The notes under the pieces: generated by a model
The model's database searches: none
What the model was told of the DNA's origin: nothing
What the model saw: the letters and a program-made list of their open reading frames with translations, nothing else
Position numbers and translations under genes: made by a program
Sequence record: OU509535.1
Reading direction: 5' to 3' (one strand)
DNA: 64,000 nucleotides
Shown: positions 31,340-49,022 of the stretch, piece after piece
Layout: each line of letters begins with the position of its first letter
Numbering within the stretch: position 1 is the first letter of the stretch

Positions 31340-31344
31340 TACAG

Positions 31345-31394
31345 TACTGAATACTTTTTCCCACGCCCTGGCGTCTCCGGTTCCTCCCGTCTAT
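31345..31394 (-). ncRNA. degenerate small non-coding unit
   Basis: minus-strand TTGACT-16-TATAAT at 31401-31428; GC-rich motif variant, no ORF. Confidence 0.35.
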
Positions 31395-31496
31395 ATAAAC
31401 ATTATACAGTACTGAAATATTAAGTCAATACTATTTTTTCAAAAAGATTAAAATAAAATACTTGCAATGCTGATATTATTATATTATAATGTTTAT

Positions 31497-31545
31497 AGTA
31501 CTGAGAAAGTGCTTTTTGCCCACTAGGGTGCTGGGGAGTATGCGT
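31497..31545 (+). ncRNA. small non-coding unit (degenerate copy)
   Basis: TTGCAA-17-TATAAT at 31462-31490; 5' hairpin; CCCACTAGGGTGC. Confidence 0.5.
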
Positions 31546-31550
31546 TAAAT

Positions 31551-31569
31551 GAGAATGATAATCATTTAC
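31551..31569. promoter_or_regulatory. Fur-box-like site
   Basis: GAGAATGATAATCATTTAC, 16/19. Confidence 0.7.
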
Positions 31570-31615
31570 AGTACTGGACGGATTTTCCCACCCTCGGGGG
31601 TCTCTTTTTGTCTAT
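31570..31615 (-). ncRNA. degenerate small non-coding unit
   Basis: minus-strand TTGATA-16-TATAAT at 31622-31649; CCCCCGAGGGTGG. Confidence 0.35.
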
Positions 31616-31654
31616 GTAGTAATTATACAGTACTGAGATACTATATCAAGTCTC

Positions 31655-31669
31655 TTTACAAATCTTTAC
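31655..31669. promoter_or_regulatory. CpxR-box-like site
   Basis: TTTACAAATCTTTAC. Confidence 0.5.
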
Positions 31670-31763
31670 AAATCACCCGGGTAGATTTATCTTTACAATA
31701 AAAGTACTTGCTTTAATCTTTCAGTACTGTTATTATATATTCATACCAAACAGGAGAACTACC

Positions 31764-31934
31764 ATGAAATACGCGTACTCTTATTTTATTGTAAACGGTG
31801 AACGTTTGACCATCGGCCAGGCTGCTGTAAAACATGAAATCATTTGCGATGATCTGGCAAAGATGCTACCAGGTGAAACGCAAGAGTTTTACAAAGGCTT
31901 TCAGAAAGTCACTGTGACCCGCTGTGAAGATTGA
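31764..31934 (+). CDS. small hypothetical protein (56 aa, not in track)
   Basis: AGGAG RBS, own promoter. Confidence 0.7.
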   Translation: MKYAYSYFIVNGERLTIGQAAVKHEIICDDLAKMLPGETQEFYKGFQKVTVTRCED

Positions 31935-31998
31935 TCCAGTACTGGGGTAGGAATACCCCTAAAACGTCCTGTAACGCATTGTAAGAGGTTTTTATAAT

Positions 31999-32226
31999 AT
32001 GGCTATAGAAGTTAACGCTGGGGATATAAAGGCGGCTGTACTGCGTACCCTGAAAGCATACGGCAGAAAGCTGAATGATCGCAACGTTCCCTATTATTTC
32101 CTTGCTGCTACTCATAAAATGGCAATAGCTGAGGCTCGCGGGTGGCTGAATGATCGCAGTACTGTAAAGAGTACCAGAACAAGAAACGCAATTGAGCGAT
32201 GGATAAAAGAATTAAATCATTTCTAA
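31999..32226 (+). CDS. small basic hypothetical protein
   Basis: ORF track; GAGG RBS. Confidence 0.7.
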   Translation: MAIEVNAGDIKAAVLRTLKAYGRKLNDRNVPYYFLAATHKMAIAEARGWLNDRSTVKSTRTRNAIERWIKELNHF

Positions 32227-32299
32227 TAGTTCAGCTAAGGGAATCAGTACTGATTCCCTGTTTAGTACTGAAATTATAAGGGGAGTTAATTAATTCCCC

Positions 32300-32314
32300 T
32301 TTACAAATCTTTAC
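32300..32314. promoter_or_regulatory. CpxR-box-like site
   Basis: TTTACAAATCTTTAC 10 bp upstream of TTGACA at 32325. Confidence 0.5.
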
Positions 32315-32359
32315 AAAAGAATGGTTGACATAGTATTCCAGTACTGGTATTATGTATTC

Positions 32360-32410
32360 ATAGACAGAACAAGTCTTTGGCCCACCGGGTGCGGAGGAGT
32401 ATCTATTAGA
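32360..32410 (+). ncRNA. small non-coding unit (conserved family)
   Basis: promoter 32325-32353; agac-agaacaa-gtct; CCCACCGGGTGC; GTATCTAT. Confidence 0.6.
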
Positions 32411-32414
32411 TTGA

Positions 32415-32439
32415 ATGAGAATGAGAATGATTTGCATTT
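32415..32439. promoter_or_regulatory. Fur-box-like site
   Basis: TGAGAATgATTTGCA preceded by extra AATGAG hexamer. Confidence 0.6.
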
Positions 32440-32444
32440 ACTGT

Positions 32445-32494
32445 ACTGAATATATTTCCGCACCCTTTTGGGCTTTTCGATTACTTTCTACTTG
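32445..32494 (-). ncRNA. small non-coding unit (degenerate copy)
   Basis: minus-strand TTGCAT-16-TATACT; CCCAAAAGGGTGC. Confidence 0.45.
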
Positions 32495-32533
32495 TTAATA
32501 AGTATACCATAATCAGTACTGAATGCAATGGTC

Positions 32534-32548
32534 TTTACAAATCTTTAC
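32534..32548. promoter_or_regulatory. CpxR-box-like site
   Basis: TTTACAAATCTTTAC. Confidence 0.5.
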
Positions 32549-32645
32549 AAAAGAAAATAATTATAAAAAGTACTGAAAAAGTACTTGACGTAATAATGTA
32601 GTACTGGCATAATGAGTACATACCAAACAGAACGGAGTAACTAAA

Positions 32646-32933
32646 ATGTTTAATGAAAATGATCATATTGTTAAAGAGTTTTCTTTCAGTAAGCCGATCC
32701 ATTTAGAAAACGGTGAAACGCTGGACAATAAATTTTATGGTAGTATTATTAAGCGTTATACATCGCGTAGTAGTACTGGAATTTTGTGGGAAGTGAATAA
32801 ACAGTACAATGGTAATTCGCTGGTTGTCAATGAGTGGGAAAGTTATGCAGTAGCGGAAATGGATTTTTCTAACTTCATTACTGAATCTTTGAACGATGAT
32901 ATCTTTTACAAGTTCACAGCGGAAAGGGTTTAA
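32646..32933 (+). CDS. hypothetical protein
   Basis: ORF track; GGAG RBS, own promoter. Confidence 0.8.
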   Translation: MFNENDHIVKEFSFSKPIHLENGETLDNKFYGSIIKRYTSRSSTGILWEVNKQYNGNSLVVNEWESYAVAEMDFSNFITESLNDDIFYKFTAERV

Positions 32934-33053
32934 AAAGTTTTAAAGAGTACTTGACAACATAAACCAGTACTGTATAATGTATTGCATAGAAAGGAGATTC
33001 CATTATTCTGGAATCTCCGATAAAACAAACTAATCAGTGAAGGAGTAATTGCC

Positions 33054-33665
33054 ATGAATGTTATCGATACCATCTATTCTAAATCTTTCGATGAACTGAA
33101 TGCAGAGCAGAAAGAAAAAGCAATTGATATTATGCGGGATCTGGAACGCCACGATTCAGATCCATTCTGGGCACAATTAATTAATGAAGATAAACGCGAA
33201 TTAATGGATAATGAATATGGTTTTACTGATACTGTAATTCATTATAGCGGCTTTTGCTCACAAGGCGATGGGGCGTCAATTAGTACTGAATCAATCGACG
33301 CCGAGACGTTTTTACGCAAAATTAAAGCATGGTCGAAATTCCGTGTATTGCATAAACATTTCAATGATGGTAATATTACATTAAAGATCGCTCGCAACGA
33401 TCATCGTTATTCTCATGAAAATACCGTTTATGGTGTGGTGGATCTGGACTACGGCACTGAATTCACTGCTAAACAGGAAGAGAAAGCGGAAGAACTTGAA
33501 ACGCTTTTGACTGAAACTATTCGTGATCTTTCACGCCAGCATTATCAGGTTCTGAGCGATGAAAACGATTATCAAAATAGTGATGAAGCATTGATTGAAT
33601 CGATTAATGCAAATGATTATAATTTCAAAGTGGATAGTACTGGTAACGTATTGGGGTTAGCGTAA
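33054..33665 (+). CDS. conserved phage/ICE protein of the family often labelled antitoxin of toxin-antitoxin stability system
   Basis: YSGFCSQGDGAS, RYSHENT, YQNSDEALIESINANDYNF motifs recalled from that family; function unverified. Confidence 0.6.
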   Translation: MNVIDTIYSKSFDELNAEQKEKAIDIMRDLERHDSDPFWAQLINEDKRELMDNEYGFTDTVIHYSGFCSQGDGASISTESIDAETFLRKIKAWSKFRVLHKHFNDGNITLKIARNDHRYSHENTVYGVVDLDYGTEFTAKQEEKAEELETLLTETIRDLSRQHYQVLSDENDYQNSDEALIESINANDYNFKVDSTGNVLGLA

Positions 33666-33755
33666 TGACTAAATTATATATTCGTTTCTGTTTTGCCTGG
33701 TACTTGTATAATCTGCAAAATGGTTATACAGTGAAATAATGCACTGATATACTGT

Positions 33756-33787
33756 AAAACGTCCTGTAAACGATTATGGGACGTTTT
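33756..33787. repeat. AAACGTCCTGTAA hairpin repeat (also 31961, 41244, 46416)
   Basis: aaaacgtcc...ggacgtttt; ~43 bp near-identical to 41238-41280. Confidence 0.75.
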
Positions 33788-33954
33788 AAGGAATATTAGT
33801 ACAATGTTAGTACTGAATGATTTAAACGCCTTACAGTGGCTTACAGAGCGTTTAAAAAGTACTTGACGCAATAATGTAGTACTGGCATAATTCATCTATA
33901 CCAAATAAGCAACAAATGGAATCAGTACTGATTCCCTTGTAAGGAGTAACCAAA

Positions 33955-34269
33955 ATGAGTACTAAAGAACTGAATGTAACTACCAACACTTATAAGACGT
34001 TATGCGGTCGGTTGTTACGTGATTATTACACTGTTGAAATCGAAGAACGCGAATTACCCGAAGATAAACACTATTGGGAAAGTGGTGTGAGTCCTCTGTT
34101 ACGGGTAACAACGTCTAAGCATGTTTTCTTTACTTCCCGCATTCATGTTAATAAGCGTGTTGAATTGACTTTCTCTTTCAGTGGTAGTTATAAAGATCAT
34201 GAGATATTAAATGATCATATCGTTATTAGCAAATTTATCCAAATGTACGGGGCGGATTCTTTGCTTTAA
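33955..34269 (+). CDS. hypothetical protein
   Basis: ORF track; AAGGAG RBS. Confidence 0.8.
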   Translation: MSTKELNVTTNTYKTLCGRLLRDYYTVEIEERELPEDKHYWESGVSPLLRVTTSKHVFFTSRIHVNKRVELTFSFSGSYKDHEILNDHIVISKFIQMYGADSLL

Positions 34270-34355
34270 GTACTTGACAATGCGATCCAGTACTGTATAA
34301 TGTATTACACCAAAGGGGATACATAGTGTATCCCTGATATAAAGGAGTAGCGACT

Positions 34356-34715
34356 ATGCGAGCTTTTAACGTTTATAAGAATGACAAGAAAATTGACGTT
34401 GTTTATTATTCCGAAGTAATGACGGCAAAAGAAGTAACCGATTTGCTGAATAGCCGTGGTGAATACAACGGCGAAGTAAAAGCATTTCGGTCATTGAATA
34501 GTGCGAATATTCGCACAGTACTGAAAAATGCTAAAACTGTTTTATTCAATGATGACGAATATTTTAATAAAGATGTTACGGGTATTAAAAACCTGGAAGA
34601 TCTGAAAAGCCTTATTGGTATTAAAGGCAACGTATACAAAGTGGGGGAAGTCGGATCTCGCCATGAATATAAATTAGCCAATAGTGATTATAAATTTTCA
34701 ATCCTGGTAATGTAA
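34356..34715 (+). CDS. hypothetical protein
   Basis: ORF track; AAGGAG RBS. Confidence 0.8.
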   Translation: MRAFNVYKNDKKIDVVYYSEVMTAKEVTDLLNSRGEYNGEVKAFRSLNSANIRTVLKNAKTVLFNDDEYFNKDVTGIKNLEDLKSLIGIKGNVYKVGEVGSRHEYKLANSDYKFSILVM

Positions 34716-34716
34716 T

Positions 34717-34920
34717 ATGAAAGTTTATATTTTGGAAGTGGAAGAATGTAATTCATATTCTTACAGTGGTACACTATCACGTGTGGAGGCGGTATTTGCC
34801 AGCGAGAAAGAAGCCCATGCCGCCGGGATTCAAAAAGTAAAAGAAGGCTATGAAGGTTATAGCGTCGATGCTTATGATATTCAGGGCGATCTTTCAGTAC
34901 TGTTAAAGGAATTAAAATAA
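34717..34920 (+). CDS. hypothetical protein
   Basis: ORF track. Confidence 0.75.
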   Translation: MKVYILEVEECNSYSYSGTLSRVEAVFASEKEAHAAGIQKVKEGYEGYSVDAYDIQGDLSVLLKELK

Positions 34921-35135
34921 TGGAATATGAATTAATATATCACACTCGGTTATATGTTATTTTCTTTGAAATAGCGTTATGGGGAGTAAAGGCAACGATT
35001 TATAATAAAGACGTTGCCGACGATCAAGAATGGATCGTTGTTGCAGAAGATAAAACGCCTCATGATTCGTTAAGTACTGATTTTAAATTATGCCGTGAAT
35101 TATTAAAGAGAATAAGAAAAGATAATAATATATAA
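34920..35135 (+). CDS. hypothetical protein
   Basis: ORF track; AAGGA RBS. Confidence 0.7.
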   Translation: MEYELIYHTRLYVIFFEIALWGVKATIYNKDVADDQEWIVVAEDKTPHDSLSTDFKLCRELLKRIRKDNNI

Positions 35136-35234
35136 AACAAAGGGGATCAATCGATCCCCTTTTTGCTTCAGTACTGAATTAATAATAGATACACTACGGC
35201 ACCCTATGGGTCAGTGCCTTGTGTCCGGCTTATG
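35134..35234 (-). ncRNA. complete ~100-nt small RNA gene (conserved family)
   Basis: minus TTGACT-17-CATAAT (35241-35269); gcc-ggacacaa-ggc; ACCCATAGGGTGC; GTGTATCTAT; ends in terminator 35139. Confidence 0.7.
35139..35165. terminator. bidirectional intrinsic terminator
   Basis: aaaggggatc-aatc-gatccccttttt. Confidence 0.85.
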
Positions 35235-35279
35235 TGATACATTATGCCAGTACTGCGAACATAAGTCAATAGATGATTT

Positions 35280-35294
35280 GTAAAGAAGTGTAAA
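35280..35294. promoter_or_regulatory. CpxR-box-like site
   Basis: GTAAAGAAGTGTAAA. Confidence 0.5.
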
Positions 35295-35499
35295 TGCACA
35301 GGAAGCGTTTTAAGGCGTTAATCTGTTGCTGGTGGCTGATAGTACAGAGAAGTGTTTTAGATTGATTGTAGGCCGTTGTAGGCGTTTATAGATAGTAAAG
35401 TACTGATAATGTTTAATGATCCTGGTATGTGCGAATTATTTTAATTTTTTTCGTATTGGGTATTGACGGATTATGTCAGTACTGGCATAATGTATCACA

Positions 35500-35622
35500 T
35501 GAAGCGGCGAGATAGAAAATCATCTCAGTAGCTGGCCAGTAAAGCATACGAAGTCCTGGTGTCGCCTCAAACGGTTTTAGGTATCAAATAGAACGTAACA
35601 TCTAAACGTTGATGATACTGAA
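35500..35622 (+). ncRNA. structured RNA candidate upstream of H-NS-like gene
   Basis: promoter TTGACG-17-CATAAT at 35463; ggcga/tcgcc enclosing gagat/atctc and ccag/ctgg; gtatca/tgatac; second promoter follows at 35643. Confidence 0.4.
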
Positions 35623-35724
35623 AACTAAAAAGAAAAAAGTAGTTGACAAGTACTAACGAGAATGAGATAATCTCTCTCGTTGAAACAAACAAACAATCTT
35701 AATCAAAACTTAAAGGTGAATAAA

Positions 35725-36225
35725 ATGGCTAAACTGAATTCTGTTGTTGTTGCTCTGATCGCTGGTGATATCGCTGCTCTGAATGCTTCTTTCGCGTCGG
35801 TATCGATGGAAGATATGAAAACTGTTCGTAACAACTTTAACGATTTTTACTCCAAATTCAAAGCTGCAAATGAAGCGGCGGAAGCGGCTGCAAAAGAGCG
35901 TAAAGCACAGATCGAAACCGAAACTAAAGAACTGGTAGACGCCCTGGTAGCTGCTGGCCTGGATCTGGAAATGGCCGCCGAAGTCGCCAGCCAGAAAATG
36001 GCGGTGAAATATCCCGAACTGGCTCCGAAGTCGGGAACTGGTAAAACCTGGTCGTTTGAAACCGTATTCGTTAACGTTGACGGTGAAAAACTGGAAATTG
36101 GCACCAAAGGCAACAAAGGCAGTATGAAAGCACTGGCGGCGGCACGCGAAGCAATTGCCGCTGGCAAATACAAAGATCGTGCTGAATGGATCGCCGCTCA
36201 CGCCTGGACTGAAACCGAAGCGTAA
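35725..36225 (+). CDS. putative H-NS/StpA-like N-terminal domain protein
   Basis: SMEDMKTV..AAEAAAKERKAQIE..LVAAGLD resembles H-NS TLETLEEM..AAAAEVEERTRKLQ..LIADGID; strongly host-optimal codons; C-terminal H-NS TWTGQG motif absent. Confidence 0.45.
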   Translation: MAKLNSVVVALIAGDIAALNASFASVSMEDMKTVRNNFNDFYSKFKAANEAAEAAAKERKAQIETETKELVDALVAAGLDLEMAAEVASQKMAVKYPELAPKSGTGKTWSFETVFVNVDGEKLEIGTKGNKGSMKALAAAREAIAAGKYKDRAEWIAAHAWTETEA

Positions 36226-36246
36226 TAATTCAGTACTGTAATAATT

Positions 36247-36277
36247 AGCCTCCTGTAATTAGGAGGCTTTTTATTTT
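36247..36277 (+). terminator. intrinsic terminator
   Basis: agcctcct-gtaatt-aggaggct + T run. Confidence 0.9.
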
Positions 36278-36367
36278 GTTCAAAAAAATATTTTAATTTA
36301 TTTTTTGAACGAACTCGAAAAATCAGCTATAATAATAAAGGGTGTTAATTACAGAGACCCCCCATAG

Positions 36368-36420
36368 TGTTCGCTACGCTCACATAATGATCTTACTCGT
36401 TGCACTCGTAAGATCATTAT
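36368..36420. repeat. 13-bp inverted repeat with GTGCAA-containing loop
   Basis: ataatgatcttac-tcgttgcactc-gtaagatcattat. Confidence 0.8.
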
Positions 36421-36842
36421 CCAATCGGCCTTTGGCTATTTCTTTTTGATTTCCTACGGAAACCAAACGAAACCACCAGCAAAGGCAGATCCCATTATTT
36501 GATTTAGTTAGTACTGCAATGAATTAGTTTAATCGCACTACAAAGCAATCAATCCCTTTTGTAATAGCTCACAGAACGCAATAAGACGCGTTTAAATGAC
36601 TTCCCTATGTAATGCCATTCCTTTTTAATAAGTCCTCTTAAAACGCGTTACAGTGCGTTATACGGAGTTTAATAATACTCATCATTTCTTTTTCAAAAAG
36701 TACTTGCATTAATGATCCAGTACTGCAATAATGTACTTCACTGAAACGCAGTAGCGAAGTAAGTAAATGCAAATAAGTACTTGACAAAGTGTTGTAGTAC
36801 TGGCATAATGAATACATCAAAACGATTAAGGAGAAACACCAA

Positions 36843-37316
36843 ATGTTAAAACTTCATAAAGTACTTGATAACGCAGTTGTGACCGACTTTTTCCTGTCTC
36901 TTAACAACGAACCGAAAACAGCGAAGGAAATTGTTTTGAGTGGTTACATTGCCAGCAAGTCAGAGATCGCACATTTGGAAAGTGCTTTCAAGTCCGGCGA
37001 TGAATTGTATCGAAAAATGCAAAATACCATCGAAGATTTGCAATATATCAATTTACGTGATATTGTAGACAACAAATTGGATATTTCAGAAGAAGCACGC
37101 GAAAACCTGGTAAGTAAATTATGTTACCGCTGCCGAACTGCAAAATGGAATCGAATTCGTAGTATTATTACTTACGATTTAAGTAATATCGATTCCAAAT
37201 CAATTCTTGAACGTATGTTATTAAATTTACAAAGCAATGAGTGGTTTTATACCGCCGCTCAATCTCATAGCGAAGAAATTGCATATATTCGTGATTATGT
37301 AATTTACAGCAAGTAA
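36843..37316 (+). CDS. hypothetical protein
   Basis: ORF track; AAGGAG RBS. Confidence 0.85.
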   Translation: MLKLHKVLDNAVVTDFFLSLNNEPKTAKEIVLSGYIASKSEIAHLESAFKSGDELYRKMQNTIEDLQYINLRDIVDNKLDISEEARENLVSKLCYRCRTAKWNRIRSIITYDLSNIDSKSILERMLLNLQSNEWFYTAAQSHSEEIAYIRDYVIYSK

Positions 37317-37389
37317 TTAATAATTGATTAGCCATCATTAAAGCTGGTGGCTAATAGAATATTAATAACCTGTTAGGAGAATAATCTTT

Positions 37390-37659
37390 ATGAAAGGTAT
37401 TAGTACTTTAATTGATAAAAACACTCATGTAAGACGTTCAATGATTGCCGTATCACTGGCTAAAGTTGTTGCAAGTGGTTATCTGGTTTTTGTTGTAGAT
37501 GGTAAATTGCAAGAGCGTTCAATTGCATTTAGTACTAAAGAAAATTGCCGTTATATTGTATTCAAGAAAGAAGCATACAAGATAGATTTACCAGCGAAAC
37601 CGATCTCCGGCGGTTACAATGTTGAAAGCCTTTATGAAAGGCCACCGTATACTGCGTAG
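37390..37659 (+). CDS. hypothetical protein
   Basis: ORF track; AGGAG RBS. Confidence 0.8.
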   Translation: MKGISTLIDKNTHVRRSMIAVSLAKVVASGYLVFVVDGKLQERSIAFSTKENCRYIVFKKEAYKIDLPAKPISGGYNVESLYERPPYTA

Positions 37660-37913
37660 AATCGATTTTGAGCGGCTTTAATGAAATATAGGGTATCAGT
37701 ACTGATACCCGTTTAAAACAGTGTAGGAGTGATTCTGTGAAGCGTGAACAAGCTTTATTGACGCCTGAAGAGGCAAGACGCTATGAAATGTTTTCAAACC
37801 AGGAAACGATCAAAGCGGCACAATATAATCCGGTTGCTTGTACAGTACAAAGAAAGAATTTTGTACTAAATGAAGTAGAAAGTATTATCAAATCAAATAA
37901 GGAGTAAAACGCT

Positions 37914-38917: not shown

Positions 38918-38923
38918 ATATTC

Positions 38924-42195: not shown

Positions 42196-42735
42196 ATGTT
42201 AATCAAAATGTATCACGGTTCTAATAATTTTGATCACCGCCAGGGATATCTGGGTGGAAAACCTGGCAATTTTCATATGGGTTTTGGACTATATCTAACT
42301 AACTCTTATCGCTGGGCTGATAATTATGGGCGACGTCATTATGAGTTAGATTTAGATATTTGTAGTACTGGTGCCGCACATAATGTATGGATTCCTACTA
42401 AACACTTTATGGAATTCATAAGAGTATATTGTACTAAAAAGTTTTATACAATGTGCTGTAAAGAATTTAAAGACCGTGAATCTTTGAATGTAGAACGCGT
42501 TGAATTGCTTATTATCAATATGGAAAGGCACGTTACGAAAATCGCTAAACCATTTGCTGAATTCGTCGCTGCCTGGGGTTGCACGCATAGTATTGAAATA
42601 TCCGGTAACTATGGTGGTGTTTGCGTGCGGCTTTATGATTTCAGTACTATAAAGAATTGTATCATAAGCCAGGAAACGCAGGATTTTTATTATCCAGATG
42701 AATTGACAAGATATCCTCAAAAAAACTTGTATTAA
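42196..42735 (+). CDS. putative ADP-ribosyltransferase-fold protein (H-Y class)
   Basis: YHGS near N-terminus and GFGLYLTNSYRWADNYG, the PARP/DUF3990-like signature. Confidence 0.55.
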   Translation: MLIKMYHGSNNFDHRQGYLGGKPGNFHMGFGLYLTNSYRWADNYGRRHYELDLDICSTGAAHNVWIPTKHFMEFIRVYCTKKFYTMCCKEFKDRESLNVERVELLIINMERHVTKIAKPFAEFVAAWGCTHSIEISGNYGGVCVRLYDFSTIKNCIISQETQDFYYPDELTRYPQKNLY

Positions 42736-42785
42736 TGATTCAGTACTGATATAATGTATTAAATTAATCAGGAGGAATATCTTAA

Positions 42786-42914
42786 ATGAATAACCGTCAA
42801 TTGATGATCGATGCATCTCGTTTTCGTTCAAAAGAAGAAAAGAGAAGTTGCATTAAATGGGTTTTGTCAACTTTCATTATTGGATTACTTATTGTTGCTT
42901 TTGTTTATAGTTAG
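42786..42914 (+). CDS. small membrane peptide (42 aa, not in track)
   Basis: GGAGG RBS; hydrophobic C-terminus. Confidence 0.55.
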   Translation: MNNRQLMIDASRFRSKEEKRSCIKWVLSTFIIGLLIVAFVYS

Positions 42915-42999
42915 TACTTGACAATATAATCCAGTACTGTATAATGTTTATCAAAGGGAATGAATTATTCATTCCCAAAATAATCAAAGGAGTTTTACC

Positions 43000-43224
43000 A
43001 TGATCTATATTATCAAAGTATCCACGACCGTAGGAAAATCAGAAGTTGTGGCTGTTATCACTTCCCTGGAAGCGAAAGATCTTCATACCCCGTTTAATGT
43101 ATGGGTGGAGGATAATTTCGGCCAATTCAGTACTGCTGAATATATCGAACAATTCGCCGTCCCGGATACTGGTAAAATCAAAGTGGATCGTATCCTGGAT
43201 TTTGATAACAGTAATTACTTTTAA
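43000..43224 (+). CDS. hypothetical protein
   Basis: ORF track; AAGGAG RBS. Confidence 0.8.
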   Translation: MIYIIKVSTTVGKSEVVAVITSLEAKDLHTPFNVWVEDNFGQFSTAEYIEQFAVPDTGKIKVDRILDFDNSNYF

Positions 43225-43310
43225 AAACGTTTGACAACTGATTTCAGTACTGTATAATGTTTATCAAAGGGAATGAATTATTCATTCCCGATTAATCAAA
43301 GGGGTTTATC

Positions 43311-43457
43311 ATGAAAGAGTATATCTTTGAAGTAACTTTCACCTTTGGCCCGCACCAACTGATCCGGTCTTCTGGCTACAACCGCGAACAAGCATTCAGC
43401 AACCTTCGCCGTATGTACCCCAATGTCGTGACCTGGGTCAAGTGTGAAGAAGCATAA
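43311..43457 (+). CDS. small hypothetical protein (48 aa, not in track)
   Basis: AGGGG RBS, own promoter and 5' hairpin. Confidence 0.65.
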   Translation: MKEYIFEVTFTFGPHQLIRSSGYNREQAFSNLRRMYPNVVTWVKCEEA

Positions 43458-43537
43458 AATAATTAGTCAGTACTATTGACAACGGGTGATAGTACTGCTA
43501 TAATTATTTTAACTTATACGGAATGGAGTTAAAACAA

Positions 43538-43774
43538 ATGTTCAGTGTCAGCAAACAAGGCGACAAATTTCTGGTTCAATACCATCATTTTGATCTGGTA
43601 TACACTCAGCCAGATTGTGTATTCAGTACTCAGGAAGGTGCTGAAAAGCACAAAAAAGCCTTGATCGAAAATAGCAACAGTGGTACATTAGATTTCATCC
43701 AACAGTACTGGAATGAATCTAAGCTGGTGGACGGTTATTCCAACACAGTTTATTATGTAGGTATCACTGATTAA
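43538..43774 (+). CDS. hypothetical protein
   Basis: start moved to ATG after GGAG. Confidence 0.75.
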   Translation: MFSVSKQGDKFLVQYHHFDLVYTQPDCVFSTQEGAEKHKKALIENSNSGTLDFIQQYWNESKLVDGYSNTVYYVGITD

Positions 43775-44052
43775 TCGGGAGTACTGTTAATGTATATGCC
43801 AATTATCATACCGTTAGCAGTACTGTTAATCGCCGCCGTTATCTGCGAACAATATCATTTGTTAGGAATGTAAACTATGATTCAATGTGAATTGTCAGTA
43901 CTGATCACGCTGTTCTATATGTTGGGGCAAAAGAAACAAGATATTTCTGGTGATAATGCATTATTGTATCAATCATTAGACCAATGGCAACGATCTGAAT
44001 TAAGCAATGCATGGGCGAAAGGTTACAACGATAGTACTGCAAAATAATTTAA

Positions 44053-44089
44053 AAAAGGGGTTGACTTACGTCAGCCCTTTTGTTATCAT
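44053..44089 (+). promoter_or_regulatory. terminator/promoter fusion cassette
   Basis: gggTTGACttacgtcagccctttt-gt-TATCAT. Confidence 0.75.
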
Positions 44090-44095
44090 TAGTAC

Positions 44096-44145
44096 ATAGC
44101 AAGAACAATGCTCAAGCCCACAGGGTGCCGAAGTGTATCTATAGT
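44096..44145 (+). ncRNA. small non-coding unit (conserved family)
   Basis: agca-agaacaa-tgct; GCCCACAGGGTGCCGAAGTGTATCTATAG. Confidence 0.7.
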
Positions 44146-44233
44146 TTATGTAGTACTGAATCATTAATTTTCTTGACAATTGGTTTAGTACTGGATATAA
44201 TAGCCGCCATTGAATACAGGAGGATTTTAAAAA

Positions 44234-44500
44234 ATGGCCTATCATACACCACATAGACACTTCATTGATAAACGCGGTATGGCTTTTAAAGCAATGAGTG
44301 ACAATCGTAACACACAAATGTACTTTAAAGATATGACGTTAGAAGAAGCTATTGAAGCTGTAAGGAATGATCGTAAGCTTTCCAAGAAAGTTGCATCAGT
44401 ACTTAATGCTTTTTGGTTTGAACGTACTACCAACAAAGAATACAAAGAAAAGATGATTGCACTTGGTAAAGTAGTAAGAGAAGAAAAATTATATCTTTAA
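44234..44500 (+). CDS. hypothetical protein
   Basis: ORF track; GGAGG RBS. Confidence 0.8.
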   Translation: MAYHTPHRHFIDKRGMAFKAMSDNRNTQMYFKDMTLEEAIEAVRNDRKLSKKVASVLNAFWFERTTNKEYKEKMIALGKVVREEKLYL

Positions 44501-44751
44501 GTACTTGACTATGTGATTCAGTACTGCTATTATATATTCATACCAATTAAGGAGATTAACCAAATGAAACAAGCTAAATTTAATTCAGAAATCAAAGCTG
44601 CAAAAGCACATAAAGTACAGTTAGTAGTACTGGCTATTGTATCAATCTTTTTGCTGTGCAACATCGGCTAAAATAATTATTACAGTACTATTGACAACAC
44701 GTGATAGTACTGGTATAATTACTTTACCAAATCAAAAAGGAGTAACCAAAA

Positions 44752-45027
44752 ATGCGGATTAAACTTACCAGTGATGAGATTCATTCAGTACTGACTACCA
44801 ATATGCAGGACTGGAAAAAGTACGCTGATATCGAAGAAGTCCAGGAACTCAATGATGATTTGAGTGTAGATGAAATTATCACTATTTGCTCATCTCAATT
44901 CTTTGATGATATCAATGATGAAGAGCAAGATGTATTTGATATCATGGATAAACATTTTATTGCGTATGATGTTTTTCCGTACACTCGCCAGGCTTATATT
45001 CTTATTCACAACATTTACAACAAATAA
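44752..45027 (+). CDS. acidic hypothetical protein
   Basis: ORF track; AAGGAG RBS. Confidence 0.8.
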   Translation: MRIKLTSDEIHSVLTTNMQDWKKYADIEEVQELNDDLSVDEIITICSSQFFDDINDEEQDVFDIMDKHFIAYDVFPYTRQAYILIHNIYNK

Positions 45028-45039
45028 GGAATAATAATC

Positions 45040-45405
45040 ATGGAAAAAGAATTTAGAATCAAATACAATATCAGTACCGATGGCGGTTTTGAAGTACCAG
45101 AAGAAGATCAAGAACGTCTTAATGATGTTATTATGATTGACATTTCAAATAAAATCATTCAAGGCTACCGCGAAGGCGAATTGTGTGAATCGTTGATGGA
45201 TCAATTCAATGAAGTGGAAACGTTTTATCGTGGCTGGTGGAGTATCGAAGAAGTTCACAAAGTACACGAATACCGTGTATTCTGGATTAACGGCGTTAAT
45301 GATATCGAAGATATCATTGTAAAAGAAAGTAGTGAATCCGCCGCCATTCAGTACTTTAAAGATCACTACCCCAATAAACGTTATCACCATTTAGAAAAAA
45401 TTTAA
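45040..45405 (+). CDS. acidic hypothetical protein
   Basis: ORF track; AAGGA RBS. Confidence 0.8.
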   Translation: MEKEFRIKYNISTDGGFEVPEEDQERLNDVIMIDISNKIIQGYREGELCESLMDQFNEVETFYRGWWSIEEVHKVHEYRVFWINGVNDIEDIIVKESSESAAIQYFKDHYPNKRYHHLEKI

Positions 45406-45493
45406 AAAGTACTTGACACCTAATATCAGTACTGCCATAATATACACATCAAGGGGAGAATAGTTCTCCCCACCATAAAAGGAGTATAATACT

Positions 45494-45925
45494 ATGTCTA
45501 AATCTATTTCTCTCGCACCAATTGAAGTACAGAATGCTTTTGCTCATGTACGTTCGTTTTTTCCTGATGTTGTTAGTGTTTCATTTGATGAAGATTGCCG
45601 CTGGAGTTATGAAACGCCTGGTGGATATTCCCCGGACTTTGATGATCATGATATTGACCAAGATATTCTAGAAGCTGCCGCTGATGCTCAATATAACATT
45701 ATGGTTCCAGTTGAATATATTGCGGATTGCTTTATTGAAATTGAACTAGCTCGCAGTACTGTAAAAGATAAACCAACTATTGTATTAACACAAATTGATG
45801 AAGAATTGTGGGACGTTACTGTGGGCGAAGGTGCTGCAACAACTTGGGAAACATTAGAAAGTGCTGTGTGTGAATATACCGATTCAATCCGTGAATATCA
45901 GTTTAAAGTTTCACGTAGTGCATAA
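45494..45925 (+). CDS. acidic hypothetical protein
   Basis: ORF track; AAGGAG RBS. Confidence 0.8.
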   Translation: MSKSISLAPIEVQNAFAHVRSFFPDVVSVSFDEDCRWSYETPGGYSPDFDDHDIDQDILEAAADAQYNIMVPVEYIADCFIEIELARSTVKDKPTIVLTQIDEELWDVTVGEGAATTWETLESAVCEYTDSIREYQFKVSRSA

Positions 45926-46013
45926 AAAAGGTATTGACAACATAATCCAGTACTGATATATTAATACACATAGGGGCAAACAACTTGCCCCACTAAACAA
46001 AAGGAACTACCAA

Positions 46014-46370
46014 ATGATTACTAAATTCTACGCTACTCGTGAACTGGCTCGGAACGTCGCTCGTGAAGAAGGTGAAACCTTCAAAGATATGGGTAAAGAT
46101 TCCCCTGCTGGTCAACGCTGGGCAGTGCTGTTCCGCGAGGTCAAAGACCTGGTAGAAAACGCTAAAGCCGTTGAAATGAACGTTCCCACCAAAGAAGATA
46201 AAGATCTGACTGATGCCCTCGCCGCTGCATTCTCCGCGATGGATAAAGCAGCAGCGGTAGTACTGAAAGTGCCGGAATTCGTAACCCGCAAAGTGCATTC
46301 AGTACTACAAAATAAATTCAACGGTAAACAGGTTCAAGTGTTTACTAAACGTAAAATTCCGGTCATGTAA
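46014..46370 (+). CDS. hypothetical phage protein, host-optimal codons
   Basis: FYATRELAR..KDMGKDSPAGQRWAV. Confidence 0.85.
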   Translation: MITKFYATRELARNVAREEGETFKDMGKDSPAGQRWAVLFREVKDLVENAKAVEMNVPTKEDKDLTDALAAAFSAMDKAAAVVLKVPEFVTRKVHSVLQNKFNGKQVQVFTKRKIPVM

Positions 46371-46393
46371 AATCTGACTATTACAGTACTAAC

Positions 46394-46415
46394 AAAGGGG
46401 CTTCAATGCCCCTTT
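46394..46415. terminator. intrinsic terminator
   Basis: aaaggggc-ttcaat-gccccttt. Confidence 0.7.
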
Positions 46416-46448
46416 AAACGTCCTGTAAACCATTCTAAGAGGTTTTAC

Positions 46449-46697
46449 ATGAAAAAGGTACAACTACACAAAGGAGTGATGAAAGTTCATTATAATGCCC
46501 CGCAACGCATTATAGATAGAGCCATTGAACTAGCCAATCAATACCTAGCTGGTGGATTAACTCCCAGGAAGTTAAGCAACGGGAAGTTATATGTAATCAA
46601 CGTTGATACTAATAATCGTATAGTAATCAAAGGTGAAAGCATATCACTGTATGAACATCAGCAGTATAACAAGAAAGTAAAAAATATTAGTAGATAA
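46449..46697 (+). CDS. small basic protein, possible ParE/RelE-like fold
   Basis: YVINV..NNRIVI..SLYEHQQYN resembles ParE-like small phage proteins (recall only). Confidence 0.35.
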   Translation: MKKVQLHKGVMKVHYNAPQRIIDRAIELANQYLAGGLTPRKLSNGKLYVINVDTNNRIVIKGESISLYEHQQYNKKVKNISR

Positions 46698-46776
46698 GTG
46701 TTGACAACTCATTTCAGTACTGCCATAATGTATACATACAAGGCAATACCGCCTAATAACATAGGAGTAACTGAAA

Positions 46777-47199
46777 ATGAAAAAATCCACTAAAATTGTC
46801 TTAGGTGTATTTGTTGTTCCGACAGTCGCCTTTTTTACTTGTGCTATGATTTTTGGTGATGCTTCTCGGGTTGCCGCAAAAATCGAAAAAGAAAAACAAG
46901 TCCAGGCACAAGTTAAGAAAGAAGAAAAACCAAATTATAACACTGTATGGGAAGCAATTTGCCATACCAGTAATGGTAAAAGGATCTCCATCCTTACAGC
47001 GATGAATAATGGAAAATCAATCGTCGGAAACGAATATATGGAAGTTACTTCCAGTACTGGTAAAGAATTTGTAATGACGAACTATAATAACAATAACGTT
47101 GCAATTGTTACACAAGATTTTAAAGGTAATGCAGTACTTGAATATCATACGGAATATGAAGTAATATTTGCAAAATGCACATTTGAATGGGGTGCATAA
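46777..47199 (+). CDS. membrane-anchored exported protein
   Basis: N-terminal KK + hydrophobic segment; AGGAG RBS. Confidence 0.75.
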   Translation: MKKSTKIVLGVFVVPTVAFFTCAMIFGDASRVAAKIEKEKQVQAQVKKEEKPNYNTVWEAICHTSNGKRISILTAMNNGKSIVGNEYMEVTSSTGKEFVMTNYNNNNVAIVTQDFKGNAVLEYHTEYEVIFAKCTFEWGA

Positions 47200-47214
47200 A
47201 ATAAACAAAAAATC

Positions 47215-47256
47215 AAAAAAGGGGGGGTTGACATATGTCAGCCCCTTTGCTATTAT
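47215..47256 (+). promoter_or_regulatory. terminator/promoter fusion cassette
   Basis: gggTTGACatatgtcagcccc-tttgc-TATTAT. Confidence 0.7.
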
Positions 47257-47262
47257 TAATAT

Positions 47263-47307
47263 CAAGAAAACAAGCTAACCCACAGGGTGCATAAATGTAT
47301 CTATAGT
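47263..47307 (+). ncRNA. small non-coding unit (conserved family)
   Basis: CTAACCCACAGGGTGCATAAATGTATCTATA identical to reverse complement at 42021-42051. Confidence 0.65.
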
Positions 47308-47382
47308 TTATTAAAGAATTTTAGTACTTGACAACGTAGTACAGCAGTACTAAAATATCTACATACAAAGGAGATTACCAAA

Positions 47383-47967
47383 ATGAACAAACATCTTAAA
47401 GTACTGAATAAATGTAAATCCAATACCGAAATGTTACTGTACTGTTACAAAAATTTAATTAAACTCGGGAGAGGTTCATCCAGAACAGTATTTTTGTTAA
47501 CAAAAAATAAAGTACTGAAAGTTGCTCATAACCATATTGGCAACCAACAGAATACGGCGGAAATCACCGCCTGGCTGTATGTTGATTATGATCGCTATTA
47601 TAATAAACGTTTTTTCGCTAAAGTGTTCCCTGATATGTCGCATTTCAAAGATGTATACATAGTACAGGAGTACTGCGACAATATCAGTACTAAAGAAGCG
47701 AAGCCATACATTGAACATTACTTGACACCTCGCACAATTGAAAATGAGCGTGCTAAACGCTTCCACACGGCGTTAAGAGATGTAGACAATACCCTTAACT
47801 ATAAAACGCTGGTGGACTTAAACATGGGCAATATAGGCCGTTCTGTAAGGGGTGCAATCAAAATCCGTGATTATGGATTATCTGAGCATATTGCTAAACA
47901 GTACCGAGAAGCCCGCTTCCAATACCAGAAGCTCAAAAGTATTAGTAAAATAAGTATTGATTTATAA
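47383..47967 (+). CDS. putative Ser/Thr protein kinase (protein-kinase-like fold)
   Basis: Gly loop LGRGSSRTV, VLK lysine, NTAE, catalytic DLNMGN, DYG. Confidence 0.75.
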   Translation: MNKHLKVLNKCKSNTEMLLYCYKNLIKLGRGSSRTVFLLTKNKVLKVAHNHIGNQQNTAEITAWLYVDYDRYYNKRFFAKVFPDMSHFKDVYIVQEYCDNISTKEAKPYIEHYLTPRTIENERAKRFHTALRDVDNTLNYKTLVDLNMGNIGRSVRGAIKIRDYGLSEHIAKQYREARFQYQKLKSISKISIDL

Positions 47968-48034
47968 TTTCAGTACTGGTATAGTACTTTCACAGGGGAG
48001 ATAATCTCCCCCAAATCACAAAGGAGATTTTACC

Positions 48035-48397
48035 ATGAGTACTAAACCATTTGTAACCACTCGTTCCAATCTGACTGAGATCTATGTACATGGTGGATAT
48101 GAGGAAACGTATGTCACTGGTATTATGGTAGAATTCCATCAGGGTTATCGGTTTATGTTGGTAGATTCAGAAATCTATCATACCCAACAAGATAAACATG
48201 GTTATGTCAATAAGTACTCCACCGATGAAGTACTGAAACGCCTGGATAATAAAATTAAACAAATTCAAAAACATCTTGACAACGGCGGAAAACTTAATCA
48301 TTTACTTTGGGATAGCTTAGATCCCTGCTACGGTTCGGATGCATATGGTAAAAGCCGTGACACTGCAATGAAAGTACTTAAAGATTATTTCTTTTAA
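48035..48397 (+). CDS. hypothetical protein
   Basis: ORF track; AAGGAG RBS. Confidence 0.8.
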   Translation: MSTKPFVTTRSNLTEIYVHGGYEETYVTGIMVEFHQGYRFMLVDSEIYHTQQDKHGYVNKYSTDEVLKRLDNKIKQIQKHLDNGGKLNHLLWDSLDPCYGSDAYGKSRDTAMKVLKDYFF

Positions 48398-48488
48398 GTA
48401 TTGACATAGGTTATCAGTACTGTATAATGTTTTGCATACACAAGAGATTCCAGTACTGGAATCTCTAATCTAAAGGAGAATACCGAAA

Positions 48489-48770
48489 ATGATTACTGGT
48501 CACATTACTAACTATGCAAAACGCCGCGATGTAGAAATCGAAGTACTGAAAGCTGGCGAAGTTGACGATGACGCCCAGGTATGGTTCTACACCGCAGACA
48601 ATGACTGCGAACCAGTACTGATGTACCTGATTAATAATGATGGTTCTCTTACTTATCGTAGCAAACTGATGAAGTCACTGGAAGATATGCCAGCACATAT
48701 CAATAATAAAGAAGTACTGAAACGCGTAATCTGCTACATCTCAGACCAGCACAAAGCGGATATGATGTAA
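48489..48770 (+). CDS. hypothetical protein
   Basis: ORF track; AAGGAG RBS. Confidence 0.8.
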   Translation: MITGHITNYAKRRDVEIEVLKAGEVDDDAQVWFYTADNDCEPVLMYLINNDGSLTYRSKLMKSLEDMPAHINNKEVLKRVICYISDQHKADMM

Positions 48771-48783
48771 TCTTTACAAATAT

Positions 48784-48817
48784 GGGGGTTGACTAATGTC
48801 AGCCCTATTGGTATTAT
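48784..48817 (+). promoter_or_regulatory. terminator/promoter fusion cassette (degenerate T run)
   Basis: gggTTGACtaatgtcagccc-tattgg-TATTAT. Confidence 0.65.
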
Positions 48818-48823
48818 ATATTC

Positions 48824-48873
48824 AATCCAGCGAAATGGTCTAACCCTCAAGGGTGCCGAGATGTATCTATAGT
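48824..48873 (+). ncRNA. small non-coding unit (conserved family)
   Basis: cca-gcgaaa-tgg; ACCCTCAAGGGTGCCGAGATGTATCTATAG. Confidence 0.65.
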
Positions 48874-49022
48874 TTAATGATTTGAAGTACTGAAAAATAA
48901 TTATAAAAAAAGTACTTGTATTTGTGATTCAGTACTGCCATAATATATCCATACAAGGGAAACATAGTGTTTCCCGATAATCCACAGCAATAGTGCTGGT
49001 GGATGAACCAGGAGTAATAACC

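Follow-up and report, generated by a model that had tools for sequence, protein, structure and literature searches.

In the PeSL (promoter-early stem-loop) cassettes of T4-type phages, a sigma70 early promoter close to consensus, preceded by an A/T-rich stretch, is joined to a G...C stem-loop at which transcription arriving from upstream ends; such cassettes recur many times among the small ORFans of a plastic early region (Arbiol et al. 2010, PMC2839356; Comeau et al. 2014, PMC4122927). The put RNA of HK022 (putL and putR) mediates factor-independent antitermination; it is ~70 nt long, with two long stems and a triplex, and putL contains a -10-like element thought to cause a sigma-dependent pause (PMC9378689). 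In virulent Pseudomonas phages, ONT-cappable-seq has identified both 5'-UTR-derived and stand-alone small RNA candidates (PMC10914365).

We analyzed a 64-kb window, the start of the genome of OU509535.1, a RaK2/K64-1-type Klebsiella jumbo phage. By blastn, positions 30260..50090 correspond to positions 1-20030 of Klebsiella phage Muenster, annotated as 'terminal repeat region predicted by PhageTerm'; for OU509535.1 these bounds are predicted from the relative. This presumed long-terminal-repeat equivalent, hereafter the early region, has a G+C content of 35-38%, compared with 25-34% in its flanks. It is rich in terminators, several of which are fused to the next promoter, and it contains about 30 strong promoters, only eight of which are followed by the element described here. 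There is good support for the element forming the initial ~50 nt of RNAs that start at some of the very strong sigma70 early promoters, and it is probably a control element, undescribed so far, that acts in early phage transcription.

A covariance model (CM) built on six copies, five from other phages and one from the window, detected exactly eight strong copies in the 64 kb (35-73 bits, E 1e-6 to 3e-17), all between 32.3 and 48.9 kb. The next-best match scored 14.6 bits, and a search of the remaining 283 kb of OU509535.1 returned nothing with E <0.7. All eight conserved copies proposed by the sequence-only reading are present at the positions claimed, each behind a sigma70-like promoter, as had also been stated. 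Judging by the alignment with Muenster, all eight appear to fall within the equivalent of a ~20-kb terminal repeat carrying early genes. The order of parts is well supported: a 5'-terminal hairpin, an invariant 4-bp hairpin (the second hairpin), a hexamer capable of pairing, and a -10-like hexamer. Transcription starts are predicted throughout.

Six copies lie on the + strand. Copy 1 (32325..32409, 35.2 bits) has its -35 at 32325-32330 and its -10 at 32348-32353 (promoter score 11/12), a predicted start near 32360, a 5' hairpin, the second hairpin at 32380-32390 and the -10-like hexamer at 32404-32409, with one mismatch in the conserved 9-mer. Second hairpin and hexamer occupy 38946-38956 and 38970-38975 in copy 3 (38889..38975, 53.2 bits), whose -35 lies within a terminator-like stem-loop, and 40389-40399 and 40413-40418 in copy 4 (40336..40418, 57 bits), whose promoter was read by hand (-35 40336-40341, -10 40359-40364) and which shares ~85% identity over 108 nt with Asteriusvirus coliphages. 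In copy 6 (44061..44145, 49.8 bits) they are found at 44116-44126 and 44140-44145, with the promoter inside terminator stem-loop 44054-44081; in copy 7 (47228..47307, 46.8 bits), which has a weak 5' hairpin, they lie at 47278-47288 and 47302-47307, with the promoter inside terminator stem-loop 47221-47248. Copy 8 (48789..48873, 72.8 bits) has a second hairpin with a 4-nt loop at 48843-48854, a hexamer at 48868-48873 and a promoter within stem-loop 48785-48806.

The two copies on the - strand are gene-free units. Copy 2 (35133..35269, 39.8 bits) runs from its promoter (-35 35269-35264, -10 35246-35241) through the second hairpin (35211-35201) and hexamer (35187-35182) to a terminator found by terminator scan at 35162-35139; its fold includes the terminator hairpin, and its GTG frame spans only 8 codons. 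Copy 5 (41972..42104, 48.8 bits) has a 12/12 promoter at 42104-42076, the second hairpin at 42048-42038, the hexamer at 42024-42019 and a terminator at 41996-41978. Its ATG frame passes through the terminator, and the length of this frame varies between copies. The same layout occurs at two further loci (L030 and L031).

Between 91 and 123 distinct copies were collected from relatives including Alcyoneus-, Asterius- and Eneladusvirus, CBB and GAP32, and the core is invariant in phages of Klebsiella, Escherichia, Yersinia, Serratia, Erwinia, Cronobacter and Xanthomonas. A sigma70-like promoter (score at least 8/12) precedes 91 of 91 copies, and in 85 of these the -10 ends 19-30 nt upstream of the second hairpin. 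A search of 185,579 bacterial genomes and of E. coli genomes found no match to the element. An Rfam scan gave none at gathering scores and no relevant match at E up to 10, in line with the original impression that no known family was involved. Since the element is shared across a giant-phage clade and uncatalogued among RNA families, it is probably undescribed.

The 5' stem had been described as variable yet paired, and the alignment of copies confirmed this. Across 91 distinct copies, the three pairs of the 5' hairpin are formed in 94-96% of cells, and each of them shows 26-43 double-sided changes; the covariation score was reached in 0 of 500 shuffles and collapsed in slid controls, and RNAalifold predicts both hairpins unaided. 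The downstream parts (an A-U or G-U closing pair, GC, a 5-nt spacer and the 9-mer) all match the original description. The second hairpin is closed by A-U in 50 copies and by G-U in 41, the U being constant, and a compensated C-G to U-A change occurs in two copies that belong to different phages. Among copies of one genome, the 5' stem varies freely and the 5'-hairpin loops differ, while the second hairpin and 9-mer are kept exactly. The data support a multicopy element that works at the RNA level and is tied to early sigma70 promoters.

Two features are new relative to the earlier description: an alternative hairpin and the terminal -10-like hexamer. The conserved hexamer downstream of the second hairpin can serve as an alternative partner for that hairpin's 3' strand, which yields two mutually exclusive hairpins (in the window copies, the second hairpin has energies of -3.7 to -4.8 kcal/mol and the alternative -4.4 to -5.7). 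The alternative is paired in 94% of cells. Within its five inner positions, pairing survives 62 substitutions and is lost through 18, nearly all the support being one-sided (wobble) changes that a transition bias could partly mimic; changes that disrupt the pair are frequent at the outer position. The -10-like hexamer ends the motif at about +44 to +49 (column shares in 121 copies: T 0.86, A 0.81, T 0.84, A 0.65, A 0.49, T 0.61).

The 9-mer admits two further readings. It could be the single-stranded seed of a small RNA that base-pairs with host mRNAs, being the most conserved unpaired stretch between the structured 5' part and, in gene-free units, an A/U-rich region and terminator, a layout usual for Hfq-type small RNAs. 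We regard this as improbable: the phage genome shows no excess of the 9-mer complement (5 sites on each strand, as many as for the motif itself), pairing with the preceding hexamer together with the -10-like hexamer explains the 9-mer better, and in distant copies it varies by pair-preserving changes, unlike a fixed seed. Alternatively, the NTG of the 9-mer could start a leader mini-ORF, Met/Val-Tyr-Leu-stop; an ATG or GTG stands 6 nt past a G-rich stretch in seven of the eight window copies, and five + strand copies encode three codons followed by a stop. This is hardly credible, as the start codon is absent in copy 1 and in about a quarter of the 91 distinct copies (outer pair scored as 'other' in 22), the stop falls anywhere from 3 to 21 codons, and it is the nucleotides that are conserved, even at third positions.

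The reading we place first, tentatively and on sequence grounds, is that the element may be a co-transcriptional transcription-elongation control site of the nut/qut/put kind. Sigma70 retained by RNA polymerase would re-engage the -10-like hexamer, causing a pause roughly 10 nt beyond it, with the conserved hairpin freshly out of the exit channel and presented to the polymerase or an early phage factor. Polymerase modified in this way would read through the numerous terminators embedded in early-region promoters, and polymerases from plain gene-proximal promoters would be halted there; the promoter-unit-terminator 'orphans' would represent the uninduced state of the switch, and the 5' hairpin would chiefly protect the 5' end. 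The covarying 5' hairpin and paired second hairpin are consistent with a signal at the RNA level, and the promoter ahead of all 91 copies, the exclusive hairpins of similar energy, and a terminator-filled region in which 8 of ~30 strong promoters carry the element also favor this reading. A put-like RNA had been suggested from the outset; the -10-like hexamer inside the element, as in putL, adds one parallel to it, whereas the RNA is far smaller than put. Further points against elongation control are that +44 lies farther from the start than classic sigma-dependent pause sites, and that the evidence for the alternative hairpin is almost wholly one-sided. Neither an N-like arginine-rich protein nor an antiterminator family emerged from a Pfam scan of 40 of the 41 early-region ORFs, inspection of all 41 for arginine/lysine-rich stretches, and searches of PHROGs (ten of these ORFs) and PDB (one). 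Moreover, read-through of the minus-strand orphans would merely produce RNA antisense to early genes, and convergent inverted pairs, which comprise 17 of 89 distinct copies (about one-fifth), are left unaccounted for.

The arrangement of the copies bears on a second reading. The family had been portrayed as ORF-free small RNA units; this holds for the two minus-strand copies, which run from promoter to terminator without a credible ORF, and fails for the other six. On the + strand, copy 1 (at 32357) faces a degenerate partner, and each of the other five has a gene 80-150 nt downstream. In at least four of the five cases a second sigma70-like promoter adjoins the gene, its activity being inferred from consensus matches (40449..40476 after copy 4; 44173-44201, 47328-47356 and 48916-48944 after copies 6, 7 and 8, all + strand). 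Nor is the family as a whole of the ORF-free kind: about half of the 89 distinct copies are leaders running into a second promoter and a gene, and about one-fifth are the convergent inverted pairs. The gene-free arrangement recurs in other genera. Orphans have their own promoter, ~95-100 nt, an intrinsic terminator (at a fixed offset of ~39 nt in several genera) and no conserved ORF. The element could be an abundant, stable, trans-acting early RNA that either sequesters a conserved RNA-binding protein of host or phage, as a decoy or sponge, or serves as a tag recognized by a phage protein, a possibility we consider nearly as likely as elongation control. Here the 5' hairpin and the orphan terminator would guard the ends, the invariant hairpin and tail would form the putative binding site, and leader copies would bear the module on mRNAs or free it by processing. 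The orphan layout is that of a classic small-RNA gene; the gene-proximal promoters imply that the upstream promoter is not required merely for gene expression; core invariance across phages of seven host genera suggests a very conserved partner; and copy number is high, at 8-9 or more per repeat. Against it, convergent pairs would yield mutually complementary RNAs, the -10-like hexamer would be superfluous, there is no resemblance to any Rfam family, and half of the copies lack their own terminator. The more specific idea of a ToxI-like or CRISPR-repeat-like decoy found no sequence support, given the absence of tandem repeats and the negative Rfam scan.

Three of the five degenerate copies proposed earlier (31519, 32460 and 30277) are recognizable; those at 31587 and 31360 could not be related to the motif. 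The first (31462..31545, + strand) retains a promoter (31462-31490), a 5-bp 5' hairpin and the second hairpin (31518-31528), but its downstream 9-mer has diverged and the covariance model gives no match at E up to 10. The second is the convergent partner of copy 1 (32450..32512, - strand; 14.6 bits, E 0.58), with an intact second hairpin, a promoter seen by eye and an offset of 67 nt from copy 1, equal to that in other phages. At 30277 (- strand), the second-hairpin sequence lies 17 nt from the inferred left repeat boundary, and it also forms both arms of a terminator at 49829-49856. AGTACTGAA, reported to follow the motif, does occur within 20 nt of five of the eight copies; it is, however, a separate genome-wide DNA palindrome (AGTACT: 945 occurrences compared with 117 expected, symmetric across both strands). 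The second-hairpin sequences at 30277 and 49829-49856 suit a DNA-level role, in which the palindrome would be an operator or activator box and, with the hexamer 17 bp further on, would make up a promoter for modified polymerase, or would act as a signal for recombination or packaging; the block also occupies -36 to -24 when numbered from the -10-like hexamer, a promoter geometry. We nevertheless judge such a role quite unlikely: the block is absent outside the repeat and hence no general promoter class, its orientation to the upstream promoter is constant in all full copies, the 5' hairpin covaries, and RNA pairing fits both the R/T asymmetry seen at the closing pair and the two compensated changes.

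The element might instead be an extended PeSL-type cassette, in which a terminator stem-loop is fused to a strong early promoter and no specific RNA partner is involved; the transcribed part would serve as a built-in 5' stabilizer and promoter-clearance leader, and conservation would stem partly from use as a homology patch in shuffling small early genes. Copies 3, 6, 7 and 8 have their -35 in a G/C stem-loop followed by a T run, an arrangement that is among those published for PeSLs (PMC2839356, PMC4122927), and the early region is a mosaic of small ORFans, with just 49-69% of the 7 kb at 38000-45000 common to close relatives. By eye, the 5' hairpin leaves ~2-5 unpaired 5' nucleotides, and so few are consistent with a 5' stabilizer. 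Described PeSLs, however, extend only as far as the ribosome site and start codon of the following gene and contain no conserved transcribed structure, and gene conversion would not yield a free 5' stem beside an exactly kept second hairpin and 9-mer. Breakpoints between OU509535.1 and Muenster lie away from the copies, and orphans and inverted pairs serve no gene. On balance, this reading seems doubtful, and elongation control remains our tentative preference.

In comparison with known systems, the element resembles PeSLs in that half of its promoters in the window have the -35 inside such a stem-loop. It differs by adding a ~50-nt transcribed part with covarying and invariant hairpins, by the second promoter that often follows, by its gene-free and convergent arrangements, and by the lack of shuffling breakpoints at its copies in the comparison with Muenster. 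Like put, it is a multicopy, nascent two-stem-loop RNA just past an early sigma70 promoter, with an internal -10-like element; unlike put, it has ~50 nt, stems of 3-5 bp and putative polymerase binding, and, as judged by the Rfam scan, it has no sequence match to put. As with the small RNAs of virulent phages, short structured RNAs would share the 5' end of a longer mRNA or stop at a nearby terminator, although those of Pseudomonas phages are single loci defined by expression, whereas the element is multicopy and defined by covariation. Lambdoid nut (N) and qut (Q) sites differ in that the 5'-hairpin loops of the element vary between copies of one genome and that the searches of the early-region ORFs turned up no N-like or Q-like protein. 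They share with it a free-stem hairpin with a purine-rich loop near the 5' end of an early transcript and a promoter-proximal -10-like element. Lambdoid late promoters are strong promoters with a terminator shortly downstream, and the orphans of the phage element have the same design.

Transcription in Rak2-like jumbo phages, distant members of the T4 superfamily, relies on the host polymerase, and several of these phages are under consideration for use against Klebsiella and E. coli. To our knowledge, almost nothing is known about the early programme of these 350-kb phages. The window coincides with positions 1-64000 of OU509535.1, a 347.5-kb Klebsiella phage genome that lacks annotation. The relatives RaK2, K64-1, Muenster, and RCIP0023 (Alcyoneusvirus) show 95-98% identity to the phage studied here, but the shared part of a 7-kb test stretch amounts to 49-69%. 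In a blastn comparison, positions 30260-50090 of the window matched Muenster 1-20030, which the authors of that genome annotated as a terminal repeat predicted by PhageTerm. Within this interval of the window, the G+C content reaches 35-38%. The early region is dense in small ORFs without an assigned function and in sigma70-type promoters. Between 30200 and 50100, 12 promoters match the sigma70 consensus perfectly (12/12) and about 20 more match at 10-11 of 12 positions, all within 20 kb; this extreme density implies that nearly every small gene has a promoter of its own. The same stretch holds 35 terminator-like hairpins, compared with 10.5 expected.

To locate the element, an RNA of about 50 nt behind early promoters, we built a covariance model from six copies, five of other phages and one of the window, and ran it over the window without filters. 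The model returned eight matches in the 64 kb, at 35-73 bits, with everything else at or below 14.6 bits; the remaining 283 kb of the genome yielded no match below an E-value of 0.7. The second hairpins of these copies, numbered 1-8, lie at 32380, 35211-35201 (minus strand), 38946, 40389, 42048-42038 (minus strand), 44116, 47278, and 48843. The search, which the sequence-only reading had named as a check, thus reproduced its coordinates for eight conserved copies; three of the five “degenerate” copies that it also reported are real though partial, and two could not be related to the motif. The 9-mer downstream of the second hairpin is unremarkable by itself (50 matches versus 40 expected at one mismatch), unlike the full architecture, which is remarkable. 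The second-hairpin block is confined to 20-60 kb of the genome. Since it is missing from the other 300 kb, we rejected a general “middle promoter” composed of the hairpin block and the -10-like hexamer. The second-hairpin sequence also occurs in reverse orientation at 30277-30290, 17 nt inside the inferred left boundary of the terminal repeat. At the other end, the last strong terminator of the repeat region (49829-49856) consists of two inverted copies of this sequence, which suggests descent from a collapsed convergent pair.

Pattern scans and the covariance model recovered 69 copies in viral-contig loci and 104 after metagenome loci were added, the sources including the Muenster region and several uncultured jumbo-phage contigs. 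A further scan provided 37 additional matches, about 30 of them previously unseen. Blastn searches extended the element to Eneladusvirus (Yersinia fHe-Yen9-04 and Erwinia pEa_SNUABM phages), Serratia BF, and Xanthomonas XaC1/XbC2. For example, the linear record of fHe-Yen9-04 carries nine copies within its first 12.2 kb and none in the next 28 kb. The strict pattern had no match in 185,579 bacterial and archaeal species, represented by one genome each, and a 48-nt copy had no blastn match in 5,426 E. coli genomes; we therefore rejected a host origin or mimicry of a host sequence. Overall, the element is conserved in phages of at least seven host genera despite the turnover of the surrounding genes.

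Both hairpins were predicted unaided by RNAalifold. In the 5' hairpin, 94-96% of cells are paired at the three modelled pairs, with 26-43 double-sided changes each, and the paired share drops to 3-50% in slid controls. Our alignments were fitted to the model and so are biased toward the structure; the covariation is nonetheless plain in the raw sequences and clear enough to define a new RNA family. Purines dominate the loops of the 5' hairpin; these loops vary among the copies of a single genome and show no covariation with the tail. Of 91 copies, 89 share an invariant second hairpin. The closing pair of this hairpin is either A-U or G-U, always with the same U, and a compensated change is present in two copies of different phage origin; such changes are the mark of base pairing in the transcribed strand. 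A site read as DNA is accordingly an improbable explanation. On sequence comparison, the element appears to act as RNA and to be under strong selection across genera while the adjacent genes turn over.

Two points on this element are new, an alternative hairpin and a -10-like hexamer. In single-sequence folds, the 3' strand of the second hairpin and the following GC are often paired with the hexamer within the 9-mer. Alignment counts find 94% of cells paired in this alternative helix. A count over 123 distinct copies gave, at the five inner positions of the helix, 62 substitutions compatible with pairing and 18 that disrupt it; at the outer position, pair-breaking changes predominate and three double changes restore the pair. 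The second and alternative hairpins are mutually exclusive, and their energies lie about 1-2 kcal/mol apart in the window copies. We consider the alternative helix likely but not proven because its support is almost wholly one-sided. The -10-like hexamer comprises the last base of the hexamer within the 9-mer and the five bases that follow, with column shares of T 0.86, A 0.81, T 0.84, A 0.65, A 0.49, and T 0.61. Relative to the predicted start (for example, near 38924 and 42069), it occupies about +44 to +49, 17 nt past the CCC and loop of the second hairpin. Two further pairings were rejected: a pseudoknot between the 5' loop and the 9-mer, in which own-loop duplexes (-1.59 kcal/mol) were matched by swapped-loop ones (-1.65 kcal/mol) and covariation was absent, and a closing stem that would join the 5' end to the 9-mer, which appeared neither in single folds nor in RNAalifold.

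The genomic context of the copies begins with a constant: a sigma70-like promoter lies at a fixed distance upstream in all 91 distinct copies, with TG before the -10 in 54 of them. In the window, these promoters score 10-12 of 12 (that of copy 4 was read by hand). The element tags a defined subset of the strongest early promoters in Rak2-like phages. A direct repeat with CTTTACAAA (31270-31290, 32297-32316, 32533-32552, and others) is found 7-9 nt upstream of the -35 in five of the eight element-bearing promoters, and 14 of its 18 occurrences on both strands fall within 20-60 kb of the genome; possible identities are an UP-like element and a factor site.

Downstream, the arrangements diverge. 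Among the 89 copies with enough flank, 17 belong to convergent inverted pairs with a partner offset of 45 or 63-67 nt, 14 passed our terminator test, mostly with the terminator about 39 nt past the second hairpin, and most of the rest are followed by a second promoter 35-90 nt on and then by a ribosome site and a gene. The sequence-only reading had described the family as ORF-free small RNA units. This description fits copies 2 and 5, which are gene-free orphans running from promoter to terminator; copies 3, 4, 6, 7, and 8 lie upstream of genes, at least four of which have their own promoter, and copy 1 is one half of an inverted pair. Translation of the element itself, as a mini-ORF starting from NTG, was rejected as a scarcely credible account. 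The convergent pairs of some relatives form long imperfect palindromes, with the promoters included (locus L011, 793-973; locus L006, 3307-3379), with arms of 36 nt at 75% complementarity and 28-32 nt across the elements, so that a read-through RNA would fold as a long hairpin.

Every step of interpretation beyond the anatomy of the element is inferred. We tentatively prefer to read it as an elongation-control site of the nut, qut, or put type, because elongation control would tie together the fixed position close to the promoter, the unvarying hairpin, the -10-like hexamer (which parallels putL; PMC9378689), the abundance of terminators nearby, and the confinement of the element to some of the promoters. 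If this reading holds, it would explain how a region so rich in terminators is transcribed on a schedule. The inverted pairs are not accounted for by elongation control, and the factor search was empty. An abundant early RNA acting in trans is almost as likely, if itself doubtful, and offers the best account of the orphans; were it a decoy, a conserved host target struck in the first minutes of infection would be implied. Action by base pairing is a slightly remoter prospect than a DNA site. An Hfq-type small RNA gene has a promoter of its own, an intrinsic terminator, and no ORF, a layout shared by copies 2 and 5 only in the window and by about 14 of 89 copies across the family. Sites complementary to the 9-mer are not enriched in the phage genome. 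Under either elongation control or action in trans, annotators can use the element to recognize the early region and the terminal repeat in this clade.

The search for a partner protein covered the ORFs of the early region. None of 41 ORFs in the repeat region encodes an arginine-rich N-terminal stretch, and no RNA-binding or antiterminator family was found by Pfam (40 ORFs) or PHROGs (10 ORFs), so a partner among these ORFs was rejected. The only matches were an H-NS-like N-terminal domain (35680-36222) and a ParE-like toxin domain (46449-46694), both weak family matches, a protein-kinase domain below the Pfam cut-off (47383-47964), and several DUFs. A 75-aa basic protein (31999-32223) matched nothing in Pfam, PHROGs, or PDB; it is the counterpart of a Muenster protein for which the annotators note HHpred matches to sigma factors.

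The region may also carry signals at the DNA level. Over the 347.5 kb of the genome, we counted 945 occurrences of the hexamer AGTACT versus about 117 expected, symmetrically on both strands and usually within a longer palindrome (preceded by C in 49% and followed by G in 49%). Its density is two to three times higher in the terminal-repeat region (for example, 30139-30312), and its sites fall in promoter spacers immediately ahead of the -10, a short way upstream of certain -35 elements, in hairpins, and in genes. Five tandem 10-nt repeats with AGTACT (30198-30247) flank the inferred left boundary of the terminal repeat (30260) on its outer side. AGTACT looks like a DNA-level site for a protein, separate from the RNA element. 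In addition, six matches to the published 19-bp Fur-box consensus cluster at 31032-32435, where the left part of the repeat is largely non-coding. The highest-scoring of them are 16/19 at 31032 and 31551 and 15/19 at 31324; at five or fewer mismatches, the window contains 18 matches versus 6 in shuffles. A similar palindrome is central in the 63-67-nt class of convergent pairs of other phages (loci L003 and L006). The cluster could reflect iron-dependent control or titration of host Fur.

Comparison with known RNAs supported the earlier view that the element belongs to no recognized family. The 4227 models of Rfam release 15 gave no match at gathering scores in the whole window. At E-values up to 10, there were 15 sub-threshold matches in 30000-50500, none of which spanned a copy from its start to the hexamer; those touching a copy (about 41921-42116 and 43929-44089) cover adjoining terminator or promoter stem-loops. 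A full-text literature search for the motif strings returned unrelated papers only, and papers on RaK2, CBB, and PeSL, the promoter-early stem-loop cassette of T4-type phages, describe the promoters without this leader. The proposed likeness to ToxI did not hold up: type III antitoxins and their phage mimics are tandem repeats of about 35 nt processed by the toxin, whereas the copies here are scattered across 16 kb, have individual promoters, and lack an Rfam match. As regards RNA anti-CRISPRs (repeat mimics), neither the Rfam models nor the E. coli genomes gave a match to the element.

PeSL cassettes come closer. Like them, all eight window copies follow a strong sigma70-like early promoter whose upstream region is A/T-rich, and a terminator stem-loop is fused to or adjoins the promoter in four of the eight (38889, 44061, 47228, and 48789). 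A PeSL, however, extends only to the ribosome site and start codon of the gene that follows, and a transcribed element is outside its description, whereas here a 50-nt structured element and usually a second promoter intervene, and some copies are geneless. PeSL-type breakpoints at the copies were not seen against Muenster, where, in this one genome pair compared by blastn, the breaks fall at 34902-35141, 40996-41066, and 45445-45934, away from the copies. A PeSL-type cassette with a stabilising leader is, in our estimate, an unlikely identity for the element, which extends the PeSL concept by a transcribed, structured part.

Among antitermination systems, lambda-type nut sites work with N, a small arginine-rich protein encoded nearby, a counterpart of which was not found in the repeat region here. 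The put RNA of HK022 binds the zinc-binding domain of the polymerase beta' subunit and suppresses pausing and termination without a protein factor. The put-like reading suggested earlier stands as to the promoter-proximal site downstream of early promoters and the -10-like hexamer, as in putL, and falls as to size and shape: put is about 70 nt with two long stem-loops (PMC9378689), and the element about 50 nt with stems of 3-5 and 4 bp. It is conceivable, at about the level we give to action in trans, that Rak2-like phages time their early genes by an RNA switch of their own, in which a minimal bistable nascent-RNA element and a sigma70-dependent pause would confer termination resistance on polymerases from selected promoters, alone or with a phage factor. 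Such a switch would join nut and put as a third type of RNA antitermination site, and it would offer a concrete way into the question of how the T4 superfamily gains access to its delayed-early genes.
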